NCBI GenBank assembly: GCA_964106645.2
Contig: OZ067043.1
Length of the DNA stretch: 64,000 nucleotides
DNA from: Podarcis pityusensis
Lineage: Eukaryota
Reading direction: 5' to 3' (one strand)
This document shows positions 11,331 through 45,463 of the stretch, piece after piece. The notes under the pieces are model-generated. The model was not told the origin of the DNA, ran no database searches, and saw only the letters and a program-made list of their open reading frames with translations. Position 1 is the stretch's first letter; each line of letters begins with the position of its first letter. Both the position numbers and the translations under genes were made by a program.

Positions 11331-12340
11331 GACAAGCCCGTGTGTGTTCATGTGTAATAGTTAGGGTGCTGGACTAAGACTGGAGAGACCCAAGTTCAAA
11401 TCCACACTCAACATTCTGAAGGGCCAATCACAATCTTTCTGCCCAACCTGTTTGGCAGGATTGCTATAAAAAAAGCAGTGGGAGGGGGCTGCTATGCTTA
11501 GCTCCTTGGGGGAAGGGTCAGATATAAATGATAGTGAAGTGAAAGTAATAAATGCAATAAGGAAGCTCATTAACTGATTTTTTTTCTAAACTGAATTTAA
11601 ACTATGCCACTTCTCTCAGAGTTGGGAGTTCATGGGAAAAGTAGTTTAGTCTGATAATCAGTTTAGGGTGAGCAAAAGCAGACATCTGTGCCCTGCCCAG
11701 CCTCAAAGTACTTCATTGTGGTTTGTGGGGATTGGTTAAAAAGCAGGAGAAATAAGCAGCCCAGGTTAAACTGACTTGAGTAACAAAGTAGTTACTGAAT
11801 CAGCAGCCAGAAAAATGCTGGTGAAGAACATCTTCCCTGGATAGGTGATCTAATGACTATCTAAGACTTTTTGCACACATGGGCATTGGCAGGAATTTTT
11901 CTGGGAGGGAGGGGGGCAAAAGTAAATACTCCAAACAAACAAAACACAGTGAACATCAGAGAACAGTTCTAGCATTTATGGTGGCTGAAGAGTGTGGCAC
12001 CGTCTAGATAGACACGCCTTCTGAGCATCTTGTGCTCCAGCTTTACCCCTCCATTGGTTCTCAGTGGGTACCACTGCTGTCCATCTAAGGGTTCTTTCCC
12101 TTCACCCATTAATTAATTGCACTGCTGCTTCACAGAATGAGCCCCTCTTTGTCAGGGAGTGCACCACTTGTTGCCCTCATCCCTCCTCCTCTGGGGTGGA
12201 GAGAATGTGAGGTATGGGAGATGCCACAGATCTTCAGCTGCCACAGAGTTACAGGCCTAAGTGCTCTTTGTCGGGAACCTTCTTCACTGCATCCCAAGCA
12301 GGAAGAAAATTCCCCAGCAGGGCACCTCATCACATCTCAC

Positions 12341-12448
12341 CGAGTCCTGAGACCAGGTATCTCTGATACACATCTTGTTATCTGCTTGCTGCTGGGGGTT
12401 CAGCTCCTCCTCTTCAATCAGCAGGTACAGTTCTTTCATGCTGTTCAC
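12341..12448 (-). CDS. MTCL2: MTCL2/SOGA1 exon H (108 nt, 36 aa: VNSMKELYLLIEEEELNPQQQADNKMCIRDTWSQDS); not in ORF track
   Basis: Acceptor ctttccAG|GTG, donor TCG|GTGAGA; resembles SOGA1 'VNSMKELYLLMEEEE'. Confidence 0.94.
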
Positions 12449-13648
12449 CTGGAAAGAACAGGGCAGGGCAAGTAGTGAGTGGAAGTCTTCAGTGGCTGCA
12501 TAGAAAAGGACGCAACAGTAGTAGCCTGACCTACTGGATCCTTTAAACAGAGGTTAACAGGTTTAGGATGATTAACAGTGAGATAAAGGATACAGACTGT
12601 AACAAGATAGGAATGTGCACCCTTGAGAGATGCCTCTGTGTCACATCATCACAGTGACTTTCAACAGCATTCTCCTCTTTGTGTTTCTGTCTCGGGTACC
12701 TTTCTGCACATTTGTGCCTAGCAGAACCATCTGTTGGATTCCATGCTAGCCTAGTTTACCAAGAGGTTGTTGTTCCCAAGTCTTCAATCACTAAGTTTAT
12801 GAAAAGATGCCTTGTGAGTCACTTCTCTTAGAGCAATTTAATCTGTGACACTAAAAAGTGCATTTATGCCTCTCTTGTGATTCTCCGTATCACTTATAAA
12901 TGTAGTTCATGCAGCAGAGGAGAAACTGAACACACACAGAGATCAATGTAGAGACTTCATATTTCTGTGAAGAACCTCACTTTTTCATGAAGAATCTAAA
13001 ACAAAGTCCATTTAAGCCTCATGTGTGAAACTGACTTGTATTTCAGCAGCCGACCTTCACCAAGCTGAACTTTATTCACAGCTGAGAAAGCAGCTTACAT
13101 GCTAAAGGCGAGATAGCAGTTCTTGAGAAGGTCATATGGAAGACAGGAAACAACTGATAAATTGGAGCTGATATGAGCCTCATTCTTGGCAAGTTTTGAT
13201 AGAGCCCAAAAGAGAAGCCAGGATACCACCCATTGCTATCTAGGAGACATAATATGTAGTCTAAGAGTGGCTAACCTGTGGCTTCCAGATGTTGTTGGAC
13301 TCCACCTCCCATACGGCCCAGCAGTAGCCAATGGTCAAAGAATTTGGGAGCTATAATACCACAACATCTGGAGAGACACAAATTAGCCACCTGTGATGTA
13401 GTTCATCCACACTATTATTGCAGCCTCATTCACCCTGTTTCTCTCCCTTCTCTTTGTAAGTGATACAGCAAAAATACATGGGTTGTGGCTATCTGTGCAA
13501 TTTATTGAAGTGTAGAAAAACAAACTCAAAGCAATTAATAGAAGCAAAAACACATGATTAAAACAAAAGGTCAGAATTATCTGCTTTAATGTCAGAAGTA
13601 TACTTTTGACTAGTCAGCAGAGAAGCTCATGCTCAAAGCCTGCCATAC

Positions 13649-13879
13649 CTCCAAGAAGTCATTGCCCTCATTTTGTAGGATCTTTCCCTGCCTCCAATGC
13701 TTCAGAAACCACTTGAGCTTCATGAAAAGGAGCAAGAAATTTTGCTTGAACTGCTGGGATTCCTGCACCAGAAGGTTCTTCTCCTGGCTCCAGAACTTTT
13801 GCTCCAGTCTCCTCTGTAGGTTCAGGCTCTGCAGCTCAAATTCTCGCCTCAAGAGGGCCTTCTGGTGATCTTCCTTCAA
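13649..13879 (-). CDS. MTCL2: MTCL2/SOGA1 exon G (231 nt, 77 aa: LKEDHQKALLRREFELQSL...GNDFLE)
   Basis: Acceptor tctgtcAG|TTG, donor GAG|GTATGG; SOGA1-like FLLLFMKLKWFLKHWRQGK. Confidence 0.96.
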
Positions 13880-14549
13880 CTGACAGAGAATGGGAAGAGA
13901 TGGAAAGTAGGTTTGTTAAATGGAGTGAAGTAACAGGGTGAGTACACCAAAATAATCAAGGATTGCTGAGCAAAGAGGAGACACAGGCATTCACATCCTT
14001 TTAAAAAGAATTTTCACATCCACACAAGTTCACTTTAGCTGCTCAGTTTTGGGGCTATGACTAGTTTTAGGGGGGAATGAGTATTTTGGAAAGGACCAGG
14101 ATGGTAGCAGACAGAGAAAGGATAAAAGCACCATTGGTTTATGAGCACATGTCAGGGGTTACATCAATGAAAAACCACAAAGATGGCTTTTGGGCTAGGA
14201 CATAGTTATCATCATCCCCATCTCAAACTTCCAACTCAGTAAATGTCTTGAGCTTTCCACTGACACTTCACATGCTTCCCAAAATTTCTGCAGCTAGAAA
14301 TCCCAGAATTCTGGCGTTGTTACTTTTGTGTTTATCAACTGTATTTCCCAGGGAGCTGCAATTCATGCCTGTTGCCTAAATACAATACTCGCAGGTAAAA
14401 TACATCCAGAGGCCTGACTAATAACTCCCGTGAATGGCCTTTTGCCACAATATTTTACTGGCACTTGTTGCTGTAGCTGATGCATCTGGGCAAACAGCTA
14501 AGTTCCAGACATGACTAGAGGATTCTAGTGATTGCCATTCATCACTCAG

Positions 14550-14930
14550 AATGAAGTAGGCAAGAGAGCAAGAAGAACCTTGCTGAATCAGGTTGAAGGC
14601 CCATCTAGTCCAGCACTCTATTTTCACTGTGGCTAAACAGATGCCTATGGGAAGCAGAACCTCAGGACAACAGCACTCTCTCCACCTGGGATCCCCAGCA
14701 ACAGAAGTATTTAGCCTCCAGGAGTGGAAGCAGAACACAGACTTCATGCCTAGTAACCATTAATAACTCAATTTTCCATGGATTTCTCTAGTAGTATTTT
14801 AAGCTCATCCAAATTGACAGCCATCATTATAACCAACAGAAGCAAATTCCACGATTTAACTATGTGGGCTGTGCAAAGAAGTACTTTCTTTTGTCTGTTC
14901 TGAATCTTCCAACATCCAGCTTCTAAGTTT
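14550..14930 (-). mobile_element. Degraded CR1-like LINE 3' fragment
   Basis: Minus frame KIQNRQKKVLLCTAHIVKSWNLL..MAVNLDELKILLEKSME resembles a decayed CR1 ORF2 C-terminus; related sequence near 28380-28610 and 55540-55950. Boundaries approximate. Confidence 0.6.
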
Positions 14931-15299
14931 GGGAGAGATTTGAGAGACAGAAGAGGTCTCACAAAGAATGGCTATCTTTATATGGAAGCTAGAGAACCCA
15001 TAGCTGACTCCACCAATTCTGCTTGGCTGCTAGAGGACTGCCGAGTTCAGGTTTGTTTTCAGAGCGTGCTTGTTATGGATAATGTACTCTCAGCATGTTG
15101 AGGGGTCATATGGAAGCATTTGCCTCTTTCCTGGCAGCCAAACAAGGTAGCAGCTGCTTTGTGCTTTCATTCAATGCTGAACTAGGATGTGCCTGAAGTA
15201 ATGGGAGGGATTAAGCCCTGTGCCTTTAGTCCCTCCTGTACTCTTGTTGCATGTCTCATCTTCTGGCCTGGAGAGTGGCTCCAGGCAAATCTCACTGAC

Positions 15300-15425
15300 C
15301 TGGAAGATTTTCTGGGTGAAGTTCTCTGCTTCCTCTTTCCTCAGTTGCCTCTCCTGGGAGAGCTGTTCTTGTAGGCCCCTCAAGCTCTCATTAGCCTCTG
15401 AAAGGACCAGTTGCAATTCTTTGAT
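15300..15425 (-). CDS. MTCL2: MTCL2/SOGA1 exon F (126 nt, 42 aa: IKELQLVLSEANESLRGLQEQLSQERQLRKEEAENFTQKIFQ)
   Basis: Acceptor ccccgcAG|ATC, donor CAG|GTCAGT; SOGA1-like sequence. Confidence 0.95.
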
Positions 15426-15514
15426 CTGCGGGGAATAGTTTAATCAAAGCCAACAGTCAGGTATGTCATCCTTGCAAAAAGTAATCTCTCCATGTCTTTT
15501 TTTAAAAAAATATT

Positions 15515-15520
15515 TTTATT
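15515..15520 (-). promoter_or_regulatory. Candidate intronic polyadenylation signal AATAAA for the short isoform
   Basis: Plus tttatt gives sense AATAAA, about 600 nt downstream of the TAG at 16117, followed by an A/T-rich stretch. Motif evidence only. Confidence 0.35.
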
Positions 15521-15849
15521 AAAGGCCCATGGAAGAACAGCCAACTTCTTGAAGGGAGTGACCTTGGCCTGTATGTAACACCCTGTTGTCATGGTGAGGA
15601 AGCTCCAATCTGTAGGTCAAGTTAGGCCCATTAGGCTATTTCCCGAGTCTCCAGCCACGTCCACCTGTTTCTCACTTGTCATGCGACATTGGGATAGGTA
15701 ACACAAGATTTGTATATGGGCCATGCCATTCTTTTTCTCATCCACATGAAATGTGTTGATCTAGTATTTCTGAAGTCAACTTATTCTCCCCAGAGTCTCC
15801 AGCCTTCTTGTCTCCCTTTAGGAACATAATCCTATACTTTGACACCTAC

Positions 15850-16023
15850 CTCAGACACATAGGAGTCCTTCTCCTCTGGTTGATATGACTTGTAGCTCCT
15901 GTCAAGTTCCATGTTGGGATCCACATCCATGGTGGTGGTGCTGTTGCTGCTGCTACTGCGGTAGAGATCAGAGGTCCTGCTCTCCGTGATGTCCCAGTCG
16001 GGGGGCTCCCTAAAGTCGGACTG
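15850..16023 (-). CDS. MTCL2: MTCL2/SOGA1 exon E (174 nt, 58 aa: QSDFREPPDWD...DSYVSE); tandem CAGCAG acceptor (alternative start 16020)
   Basis: Resembles SOGA1 'DFRDLPEWE...DSYASE' (recalled). Donor GAG|GTAGGT, phase 0/0. Confidence 0.9.
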
Positions 16024-16026
16024 CTG

Positions 16027-16826
16027 CATGCATGGGTAAGTTAATGAGAACAAACCAAAAGAGCAGAAAAGAAAAGAAAAAACAAACAAAACAATGGGTC
16101 TCAGGAACAATAAGAGCTACAAGACAACAAAAAGGATGAAGAGGAGGAGGAACTTCACTACCGTGGCAGAAGACAAAGTGGAAAACAAAAGGAGACACAA
16201 AATGAGCAGACACGTGGGCTGGATTGTTTGGGGAGGGGGGAAAAGAGAGAGAGGGAAAAAATGTGCAAACACCAGTTATGGTGCCATGCAGTGCCTGGGG
16301 TGGGGCTAGTTGAGGGAGGAAGGGGGGGCAGGAGCATGCACAAAAATAGAACTCTGAAAAACTGGAGTGTGCTTCAGGAGGTTGCAACCCTTCCCCAGAT
16401 CCCCTTCCCTTTCTTAGGTCTTACCTTAGATCAGAAGCAGCATGTACCTGGCCTCCTGGCAACAGCAGCAGTACTGTTTACCAGAAGGGATGAACTGGAA
16501 GGGAGCCTGGTACTGTGTGGGCACATTGGTGGCACCAATGTGGTGCTGTTGCCGATGCAGCCCATACAATGCCACTACCTGCAAGCAGTAGCAATTCAAT
16601 TGCCAGGAGGCCAGGTGTGCAGTGATGCTCCACTAGCTGCTGTTGTCCTAGACCAGTCTTCTCCAACTTAGTGTCCCCCAGATGATGATGGACTGCAGCT
16701 GGTACTAAATAATTCTTCAGCAGCAGCTGTAATGTGGTTTCCACTTCTCAAAGCAATCTTCCTCCTGCCTCATGCACACTCCACTAAACCAGAGTCCTAC
16801 CTTGTCACTAGCCACAGTTCCATGCA
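16027..16826 (-). promoter_or_regulatory. Cluster of five RBFOX-type UGCAUG splicing motifs
   Basis: Plus-strand CATGCA (sense TGCATG) at 16027, 16285, 16335, 16771 and 16821, all in one 967-nt intron. Confidence 0.7.
16117..16218 (-). CDS. MTCL2: Candidate alternative terminal coding segment of MTCL2: 33-aa hydrophobic membrane tail PTCLLILCLLLFSTLSSATVVKFLLLFILFVVL*
   Basis: Strong pyrimidine tract (tttttccctctctctcttttcccccctcccc) then aatccAG|CCC. Phase 0, in frame with exon D; TAG at 16119-16117. Similar to the SOGA3 C-terminus as recalled. Confidence 0.75.
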   Translation of the reverse strand, partial: PTCLLILCLLLFSTLSSATVVKFLLLFILFVVL

Positions 16827-16990
16827 GTGAGCCAATTGTTAGTTGTCATTTCAGAAAAGAGAGGCAGAAAAGGGAAGTTACATTAACAGGGCCAGGTTCT
16901 GATTTGTTAAAGCAGGAGAAAACAGCATGGGCAAATAAAGCAATAATCACTGCCAGGAAGTTACTGTTGACATCTCAGGAAAAGCCTCAC

Positions 16991-18220
16991 CTGGAATTCA
17001 GAGCCATGAGCTTTCTGCAGAGCCTCTTTTGTGGAATCCTGGGAGCTGGCGCTTGGCAAGGAGTCCTTCTGGTCTTTCAGGTGGTCTCCAATGTAGTCCA
17101 CCTTCCTCATGAAGGTGTTTAGCTCCTGCTGAAGGACCCCAAGCCTCATCAAAATGGCACTGATCAGCTTAGAGTCAGTCATACTCTCATTATCCATGGC
17201 TTCGCTCAGCACCAGCTCTGCACAGTCATTGTCCATGCAGAGCTTGAGACTGGAGGTGAAGCCATTGGCATCAGAGATCAGGACATCAATGGCTTTGCTG
17301 ACAAGCGCAGCCTGGTCCCTGATGTCAAGGAGGGTCTCAAAGTCCTTGGACTTGAGAAGCCTGCAGGGGCTGCTTTCATGCGACTTGCTAAAGCCATTGC
17401 CAGGTGCTCTCTCCTTGGCATCATTCTCTCCCCCAATGGGCACCTCTCTCCAAAGCGACGTTGGGATGCACTGGGCAGAGTCACCAGCCTCAGCATCCGT
17501 CTCCAGCATGGGCCGAGTGGTTTGGCAGGAAGCAAGGTCACAGCGCTGCAAGTTGGAGAGCAGGACACGGTTCTCATACTGGAGCTTCTTAACCTTGCCA
17601 CTTAGCTCACTGATTTGGACCTTGGCCGTGGCCAGTTCTTCTTGGGAGGTCTCACTAATCACTGAGCAGCTGTCCTCAGACAGAGTGATGTCCAGGTCAT
17701 GGTCTGACTTGTACTTATTGAGCTCATTCATGAGGAGCTTGTTCTGCTCCTCCAACTCCATCAGCGAGCGCCTCAGCAGTTCTGCCTCCTCCTCCACAAA
17801 CTGCAAGTGCCGCCTAAGCTCCACCACACTGTCCCCAGAGTCCCCGCAGTTTGTCATGGAGAAGGCAAACCGGATGTCTTGCCCTAAGAGTTCTTTGTCT
17901 CCTTGGCCCCTCATGTCTTCCATCTCTGCCCTCAGCCCTCGGTTCTCAACCTCAAGCTCTACTATCCTCCGGCTCAAGATGTTGGCTTCTTCCTCTACAA
18001 GCTTCAGGTGGACTTTTAGCTCTGCCTCTCTGGAATGAGGGGAGTCAGCCAGTTCCTCTATGGAGAGGGAGCTCTCCAGGTCCCCATACAAGGATCTGTA
18101 CTTCGTCAGCTCCTCCTTCATACTGTCGTTCTCTTTGGCTAACTTGGTCAGTTTCTTGCACATCAGAGCAGATTCCTCCTTAGCAAAATGCAATTGACAC
18201 TTGAGGTCTGCGCTGTCCTC
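16991..18220 (-). CDS. MTCL2: MTCL2/SOGA1 large exon D (1230 nt, 410 aa; SOGA/DUF3166-type coiled-coil region, EDSADLKCQLHFAKEES...HGSEFQ)
   Basis: 410-codon open frame with SOGA-family motifs (LKVHLKLVEEEANILSRRIVELEVENRGL; LSGKVKKLQYENRVLLSNLQRCDLAS). Acceptor tgctAG|GAG, donor CAG|GTGAGG. Confidence 0.97.
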
Positions 18221-24925: not shown

Positions 24926-24988
24926 CTGGACAGATGACTTCTTGTCTGTCTTCCCAAGAGAACGTGATCCTCTTTTCTTCAGAGAATT
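24926..24988 (-). CDS. MTCL2: MTCL2/SOGA1 exon C (63 nt, 21 aa: NSLKKRGSRSLGKTDKKSSVQ); not in ORF track
   Basis: Read manually: tttcAG|AAT TCT CTG AAG AAA AGA GGA...GTC CAG|GTACC. Resembles SOGA1 'SLKKRGTRSLGKADKKTLVQ' (recalled) and bridges exons B and D in frame. Confidence 0.93.

Positions 24989-35303: not shown

Positions 35304-35564
<261 letters not shown>

Positions 35565-45055: not shown

Positions 45056-45463
<408 letters not shown>

Follow-up and report, generated by a model that had tools for sequence, protein, structure and literature searches.

A hydrophobic tail exon in the MTCL2 gene of the lizard Podarcis pityusensis and its counterparts across vertebrates

The MTCL2 locus and its tail exon

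The window considered here, a stretch of 64,000 nucleotides from contig OZ067043.1 of the Podarcis pityusensis assembly GCA_964106645.2, carries on its minus strand a series of exons of MTCL2 (SOGA1). The identity of the host gene is clear from two kinds of data. In a maximum-likelihood tree, exon D groups with gecko and python MTCL2 (96/98) within the MTCL2 clade (100/99), apart from MTCL1 and SOGA3. Pfam places two copies of the SOGA domain (PF11365) in exon D and one of PF14818 in a later exon of the same gene. In the portion compared, a Podarcis muralis MTCL2 model is also identical to exon D in its 3' part and to exon E at its end. The exons were placed by tblastn with turtle and gecko MTCL2 and their splice sites were read directly, the similarity searches with the spliced MTCL2 model being made exon by exon. 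The exons and the tail segment that is the subject of this analysis are as follows.

45239..45463, minus strand: MTCL2 exon A, 225 nt, 75 codons; the first coding exon is outside the window (tblastn, splice sites)
35406..35564, minus strand: MTCL2 exon B, 159 nt, 53 codons (tblastn, splice sites)
24926..24988, minus strand: MTCL2 exon C, 63 nt, 21 codons (tblastn, splice sites)
16991..18220, minus strand: MTCL2 exon D, 1230 nt, 410 codons, two SOGA coiled-coil domains (Pfam PF11365, tree, RNA)
16219..16280, minus strand: tail acceptor region, with branch-like CATAAC at 16275-16280, pyrimidine tract at about 16262-16228 and AG at 16220-16219 (read from sequence)
16117..16218, minus strand: predicted membrane-tail coding segment, 33 codons and TAG, homologous to the SOGA3/MTCL1 C-terminus (sequence, alignment)
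15850..16023, minus strand: exon E, 58 codons, in-frame cassette (RNA joint 16991^16023; skipped in some models)
15300..15425, minus strand: exon F, the first exon that the short isoform would leave untranslated (RNA joints)

The exon D donor (16991/16990, with 16991 seen in RNA) faces three possible acceptors, namely those of the tail, of exon E and of exon F. Exons A-D, to which the initial annotation had ascribed 559 codons, indeed add up to this number with their measured lengths of 225 + 159 + 63 + 1230 nt. Tetrapods and shark, like the otophysan locus L006, have exon D in one piece; in a goby it is split into at least five exons (L008:17061-24975). Further downstream, positions 13275-13312 in intron G-H and 14876-14923 in intron F-G draw many unrelated RNA contigs and reads and are probably fragments of dispersed repeats.

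The elements that had been claimed for the tail, i.e., the branch-like CATAAC, the pyrimidine tract, the acceptor AG and 33 phase-0 codons closed by TAG, are all present at the positions given above, and the position of the acceptor is that of the acceptor used in goby RNA. The encoded peptide contains, as also proposed, a single charged residue, K22, and two hydrophobic blocks (GRAVY 2.41). By computation, it is hydrophobic enough for C-terminal membrane insertion, with 19-residue KD windows of 1.8-2.5 and a summed Hessa scale down to -2.0. AlphaFold2, run on the tail with a 17-row alignment, predicts helices at residues 2-14 and 17-32 with modest confidence (mean pLDDT 74.5). The simplest reading of this prediction would be a hairpin or kinked anchor that leaves the coiled coils in the cytosol. 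No Pfam model covers the tail, and the predicted RNA fold over the tail exon is nothing unusual (z -0.21).

Homologues and conservation of the tail

The homology of the tail to the C-terminus of SOGA3 (MTCL3) had been proposed from a sequence given for the human protein, which proved to be that of the turtle, bird and frog SOGA3 proteins in the databases. This homology holds up against non-human SOGA3: without a gap over the 33 residues, the tail shares 19/33 with turtle SOGA3, 20/33 with elephant shark SOGA3 and 21/33 with bird MTCL1 models. The BLOSUM62 score of 85 compares with a mean of 8 (sd 11) and a maximum of 66 among 200,000 composition-matched shuffles, none of which scored as high, and the next-best stretch across the six frames of the window scores 35. 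Nine columns, that of K22 included, are invariant among 17 tails from lamprey to lizard, and the tail of SOGA3 itself is near invariant from lamprey to birds.

The similarity extends to the gene structure. SOGA3, as the short MTCL2 would do, joins two SOGA coiled-coil domains directly to this 33-residue hydrophobic end, and in both genes the tail comes directly after the large SOGA exon, in phase 0, and is terminated by a stop. The claim of a shared FQ|P junction, however, did not survive: SOGA3 exon D ends in SVSQ, and MFQ sits in the tail exon, as seen in the read-through proteins P0097 and P0113. The matching place in the window reads ACA ATC CAG, with the AG of the last codon used as the acceptor; hence the MTCL2 acceptor is shifted three codons further in. 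The two genes also differ in that the tail is the main annotated end of SOGA3, whereas in MTCL2 it belongs to an unannotated minor acceptor, evolves faster and has been lost from the mammals that were compared. The literature searched contained no account of what the SOGA3 tail does.

The third paralogue, MTCL1 (SOGA2), has the same tail at the end of bird and goby gene models that group in the MTCL1 clade and are homology-based partial models, not transcripts. In lamprey, a short tailed model of 861 aa and a long model of 1526 aa without the tail (P0447/P0448) lie on the same contig and part at residue 825. Taken together, the tail in the MTCL1 models and the lamprey pair indicate, at the level of gene models, that the choice between a short tailed and a long product predates the three jawed-vertebrate paralogues, in line with the earlier suggestion of an ancestral alternative tail.

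As a separate observation, reading through the exon D donor in mammal-like MTCL1 yields some 32-35 mostly hydrophobic residues with a stop at the same place and only in-frame changes of length (P0056, P0062, P0063, P0065, P0066, P0068, P0070, P0071, P0073, P0074, P0077, P0079, P0082, P0084, P0087, P0092 and P0099). This intron read-through may be a second, unrelated membrane tail. The corresponding read-through of the MTCL2 exon D donor was considered as a second anchor and rejected, as its frame differs between lizard and gecko.

Was the tail of MTCL2 maintained as a coding sequence? In sauropsids, its frame, length, AG and stop are intact in Gekko japonicus (30/33 residues identical), in the reptile contig L001 (29/33) and in birds (L002, L013 and L016, 23-24/33), so that the frame is unbroken in relatives, as the initial annotation had anticipated. 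The branch motif is also kept in lizard, gecko, L001 and birds, and across sauropsids the 102 nt of the tail are free of indels, against several in both flanks. The variable columns fall on codon positions 1, 2 and 3 in the ratio 10/1/8 among sauropsids, with second positions spared (p=0.005), and 17/7/20 between lizard and goby, a pattern which, as far as can be read from sequence, is that of a hydrophobic coding segment. The orthologous tail of teleost MTCL2, with 34 codons at the same place, is 55% identical to the lizard peptide. Selection on the frame, which the initial annotation had proposed to measure, is strong in teleosts, where the comparison of gobies with three other fish contigs gives a pN/pS of 0.03-0.07 (p of about 1e-5 or lower); in sauropsids it is weaker, with a ratio of 0.26-0.58. 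Synonymous divergence of the tail is 0.07 to gecko and 0.30 to bird, compared to 0.35 and 0.82 in exon F, i.e., a fifth to a third of the latter, which points to constraint acting on the RNA as well.

The tail is decayed or missing in other tetrapods, each group being represented by one species, which makes for thin sampling of platypus, bat and frog. Platypus (L012:12230-12460) retains a relic in which the acceptor AG is gone, 15 nt are inserted and the stop is lost. The 1975-nt D intron of a bat shows no trace of the tail and no TGCATG, and neither tail nor exon E is found in the gap-free 14-kb intron of the tailed frog Ascaphus. The survey leaves out the rodent-like, shark and otophysan fish contigs L003-L006, which end soon after exon D, as well as mole-rat and marsupials. 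An extension of the six-row tail alignment via a genomic reference, which does not reach fragments and longer proteins, returned nothing. Given a broken tail in platypus and none in the bat, the sole placental compared, the relevance of the tail to human MTCL2 is limited and probably low.

Transcripts and splicing signals

The short spliced MTCL2 isoform that had been claimed does exist, in goby RNA. Two Logan proteins, P0351 and P0354, which are MTCL2 by tree (100/99), end in the tail. In contig L007, from which P0351 comes, a single intron-free frame of 933 codons has the exon D donor joined exactly to the tail acceptor; the comparison with goby genomic contig L008 shows that about 2.1 kb between exon D and tail are skipped. 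Past the stop, L007 continues into the conserved exon E acceptor and ends a few letters inside exon E. P0354, the second tailed goby MTCL2, has 950 residues in 3204 nt (as judged by the lengths of protein and contig), and the goby automatic model P0060 already uses the MTCL2 tail. The L007/L008 junction demonstrates that a short MTCL2 RNA exists in fish and that the tail acceptor is an alternative to that of exon E, lying upstream of it. The tail exon is real, ancient and unannotated, and it is productive in fish and only possibly so in lizards. No tailed MTCL2 protein of a tetrapod was found among about 100 matches, in a search weakened by clustering and length limits.

For the window, positions 12300-17500 were aligned with four RNA runs, two as contig sets and two as raw reads. 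The joints seen in them are D-E (16991^16023), E-F, F-G and G-H. The joint 16991^16218 was found in none of these four runs, which have no tissue labels; given that contigs drop rare forms and that the raw runs supplied only 24 and 17 reads, this is no test of its absence. The only contig over the tail acceptor (X1, 16120-16320, depth 3.5) is unspliced. Intron D-E (16024-16990) has the most unique intronic coverage in X1 and X3, with unspliced contigs at depths of 3.5-6, and may be slowly spliced or retained.

The non-coding elements around the tail are the following.

16761..16990, minus strand: conserved non-coding block that follows the exon D donor and holds TGCATG at 16821-16826 and 16771-16776; 86, 74 and 69% identical to gecko, L001 and bird, respectively
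16285..16340, minus strand: two TGCATG upstream of the tail branch point, at 16335-16340 and 16285-16290; gecko, L001 and bird retain the proximal one
16024..16116, minus strand: 93-nt spacer, conserved between lizard and teleost, which provides 3' UTR sequence to the tail isoform and the 3' splice site to exon E; branch-like TCATTAAC at 16040-16047, TGCATG at 16027-16032 and a tandem CAGCAG acceptor; the goby tail transcript reads through it
15515..15520, minus strand: AATAAA, 330 nt into intron E-F, a non-conserved motif and the sole poly(A) signal candidate in the vicinity of the tail

The acceptor of exon E has TGCATG where its pyrimidine tract should be, an arrangement kept from lizard to teleost; the motif of this acceptor is also altered in platypus, and the models of python, sugar glider and mole-rat leave exon E out. 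The exon E peptide diverges fast although its acceptor is kept. In the 967 nt of intron D-E, TGCATG occurs five times, as compared to 0.62 occurrences expected from the window background (p about 5e-4). Three of them have conserved positions throughout the sauropsids, with birds showing only GCATG at the exon E acceptor, and all are gone from platypus and bat. The conserved block, in which no reading frame is kept, has a TGCATG 143-167 nt from the exon D donor in lizard, gecko, L001, bird and frog. Both block and motif are recognisable in Ascaphus (L009:1746-1960), where tail and exon E are absent; platypus and bat have lost them. RBFOX factors have TGCATG as their motif and may control the choice between tail and exon E.

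From the tail stop it is 93 nt to exon E and 267 nt to the exon E/F junction; by the usual rule, nonsense-mediated decay is elicited when a stop precedes a later exon junction by more than 50-55 nt. The exon E donor is intact in all species compared. Neither AATAAA nor ATTAAA follows the tail stop in bird, where intron E-F has 174 nt, or within 1303 nt of L001; such a signal has no fixed position common to the fish contigs, and no pile-up of RNA 3' ends after the tail was seen at the depth obtained in the four runs. The sauropsid tail exon could, accordingly, now be mainly a decay switch: splicing to 16218 and then on to exon F would send the message to nonsense-mediated decay, so that MTCL2 is lowered and little anchored protein is made. 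Besides the stop, the intact donor and the lack of a conserved poly(A) signal, this possibility draws on the synonymous sites of the tail, which are unusually still compared to exon F, as in RNA-level elements, on the clustering of TGCATG, on the lack of a tail junction in steady-state RNA, and on the human MTCL3-KIAA0408 read-through, which has been called a likely decay candidate (10.1101/2025.08.01.668123). The likeness to conserved poison exons and decay-coupled alternative 3' splice sites also includes the conservation of exon and flanks, the in-frame stop upstream of junctions and the clustered splicing-factor motifs. However, a pure decay exon needs a stop only, and not 33 conserved hydrophobic codons free of indels and with their second positions spared. 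In further distinction from poison exons, the MTCL2 tail encodes a selected peptide with paralogous counterparts, and its goby form was assembled without a break through exon D, which indicates that it is stable there. On balance, decay as the main role of the sauropsid exon deserves serious attention but appears unlikely.

Another explanation, which we consider improbable, is that the tail acceptor is unused in the lizard and that the sequence is a long pyrimidine-rich element governing the splicing of exon E, its frame being a slowly decaying relic of the kind found in platypus. Exon E lacks a separate pyrimidine tract beside its AG, the first tail codon varies (P, S or A), and the coverage over the acceptor is unspliced only. 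Such an element would hardly account for the retention of AG, branch motif, frame and stop in lizard, gecko, L001 and birds, for the contrast between an indel-free tail and its flanks, or for a codon-position pattern that fits a hydrophobic coding segment. The last possibility, that a T/C-rich intron stretch resembles any membrane tail by chance, pyrimidine tracts being translated into F/L/S-rich text that scores 25-35 here, can be dismissed, since it is refuted by the shuffle test, the occurrence of the tail at the same position in paralogous genes, the goby splice junction and the selection in teleosts.

A proposed short anchored MTCL2 in the context of the MTCL family

What is known about the long MTCL2 helps in envisaging the role of a tailed form. 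In mouse, an N-terminal fragment of MTCL2 self-associates, binds CLASP2 and reaches the Golgi with the help of giantin, the sole microtubule-binding region is C-terminal and KR-rich, and the long protein is described as a cytosolic protein of 180 kDa that is bound to the Golgi via partners (10.1101/2021.09.07.459224). In the same study, MTCL1 is named as the only paralogue of MTCL2, a Golgi-binding region could not be found in MTCL1, and a transmembrane part is nowhere mentioned (10.1101/2021.09.07.459224). By analogy, the mouse N-terminal fragment would overlap approximately with the short isoform. Long and short MTCL2 would come from the same gene and share the N-terminal self-associating coiled coils; while the long form reaches the Golgi via giantin and CLASPs, the short one would be anchored directly and would be without the KR-rich microtubule-binding region.

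The predicted short protein also resembles the tail-anchored golgins (giantin, golgin-84 and CASP), in which a coiled-coil rod stands on a C-terminal membrane segment, CASP being produced by alternative splicing of the CUX1 locus, which has a quite different long product (PMC6633398, PMC11789633). The likeness is architectural: golgins have a single helix, whereas the MTCL2 tail consists of 33 residues with two hydrophobic blocks, a polar hinge and a lysine, and nothing after it. The hydrophobic end of SOGA3, present in databases, and the splice-selected membrane anchors of coiled-coil proteins, as in CUX1/CASP (PMC6633398, PMC11789633), were known already. No description of a membrane-anchored isoform of MTCL2 or MTCL1 was found in the literature searched, which contained few subscription papers.

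We consider it probable, if well short of certain, that the MTCL family has inherited the tail as an alternative coding end, one that gives rise to an anchored short MTCL2 acting as a membrane docking subunit or as a diluter of crosslinking. Under this explanation, joining of exon D to exon E or F would yield the long, microtubule-binding MTCL2, and joining to the upstream acceptor, in the lizard as in fish, would append 33 hydrophobic residues and a stop. With exon D ending at residue 789 (turtle numbering), the short protein, presumably stable, would have about 810-820 residues and, like SOGA3/MTCL3, would combine coiled coils in its N-terminal part with a membrane anchor at its C-terminus. 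The anchor would probably be a two-helix hairpin inserted post-translationally. Such a form would keep the region reported to self-associate and to bind Golgi and CLASP2, and would lose the sole microtubule-binding region; it could then dock long MTCL2 or CLASP, its putative partners, on the Golgi or ER membrane, or else dilute crosslinking. The splice choice would be shifted by RBFOX-type factors in certain cell types.

A broader scenario can be offered tentatively, as a possibility rather than an expectation. The ancestral MTCL gene would have had a splice switch between a long and an anchored product; SOGA3 would have fixed the anchored state, MTCL1 and MTCL2 would have hidden the switch, and mammalian MTCL2 would have lost it, relying on the giantin/CLASP route. 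The short forms would then be the missing membrane receptors that co-assemble with the long ones via their shared coiled coils, under RBFOX control in neurons and muscle.

Whichever function prevails, the tail records an ancient exon at each stage of its history: under strong selection in fish, under relaxed selection in sauropsids, reduced to a relic in platypus and gone in the bat. The attachment of microtubules to the Golgi by MTCL proteins is only partly explained, and a family-wide, splice-selected tail provides a direct test, one that is feasible both in chicken and in fish, which express the isoform. For the unstudied SOGA3, the tail offers a first hypothesis.
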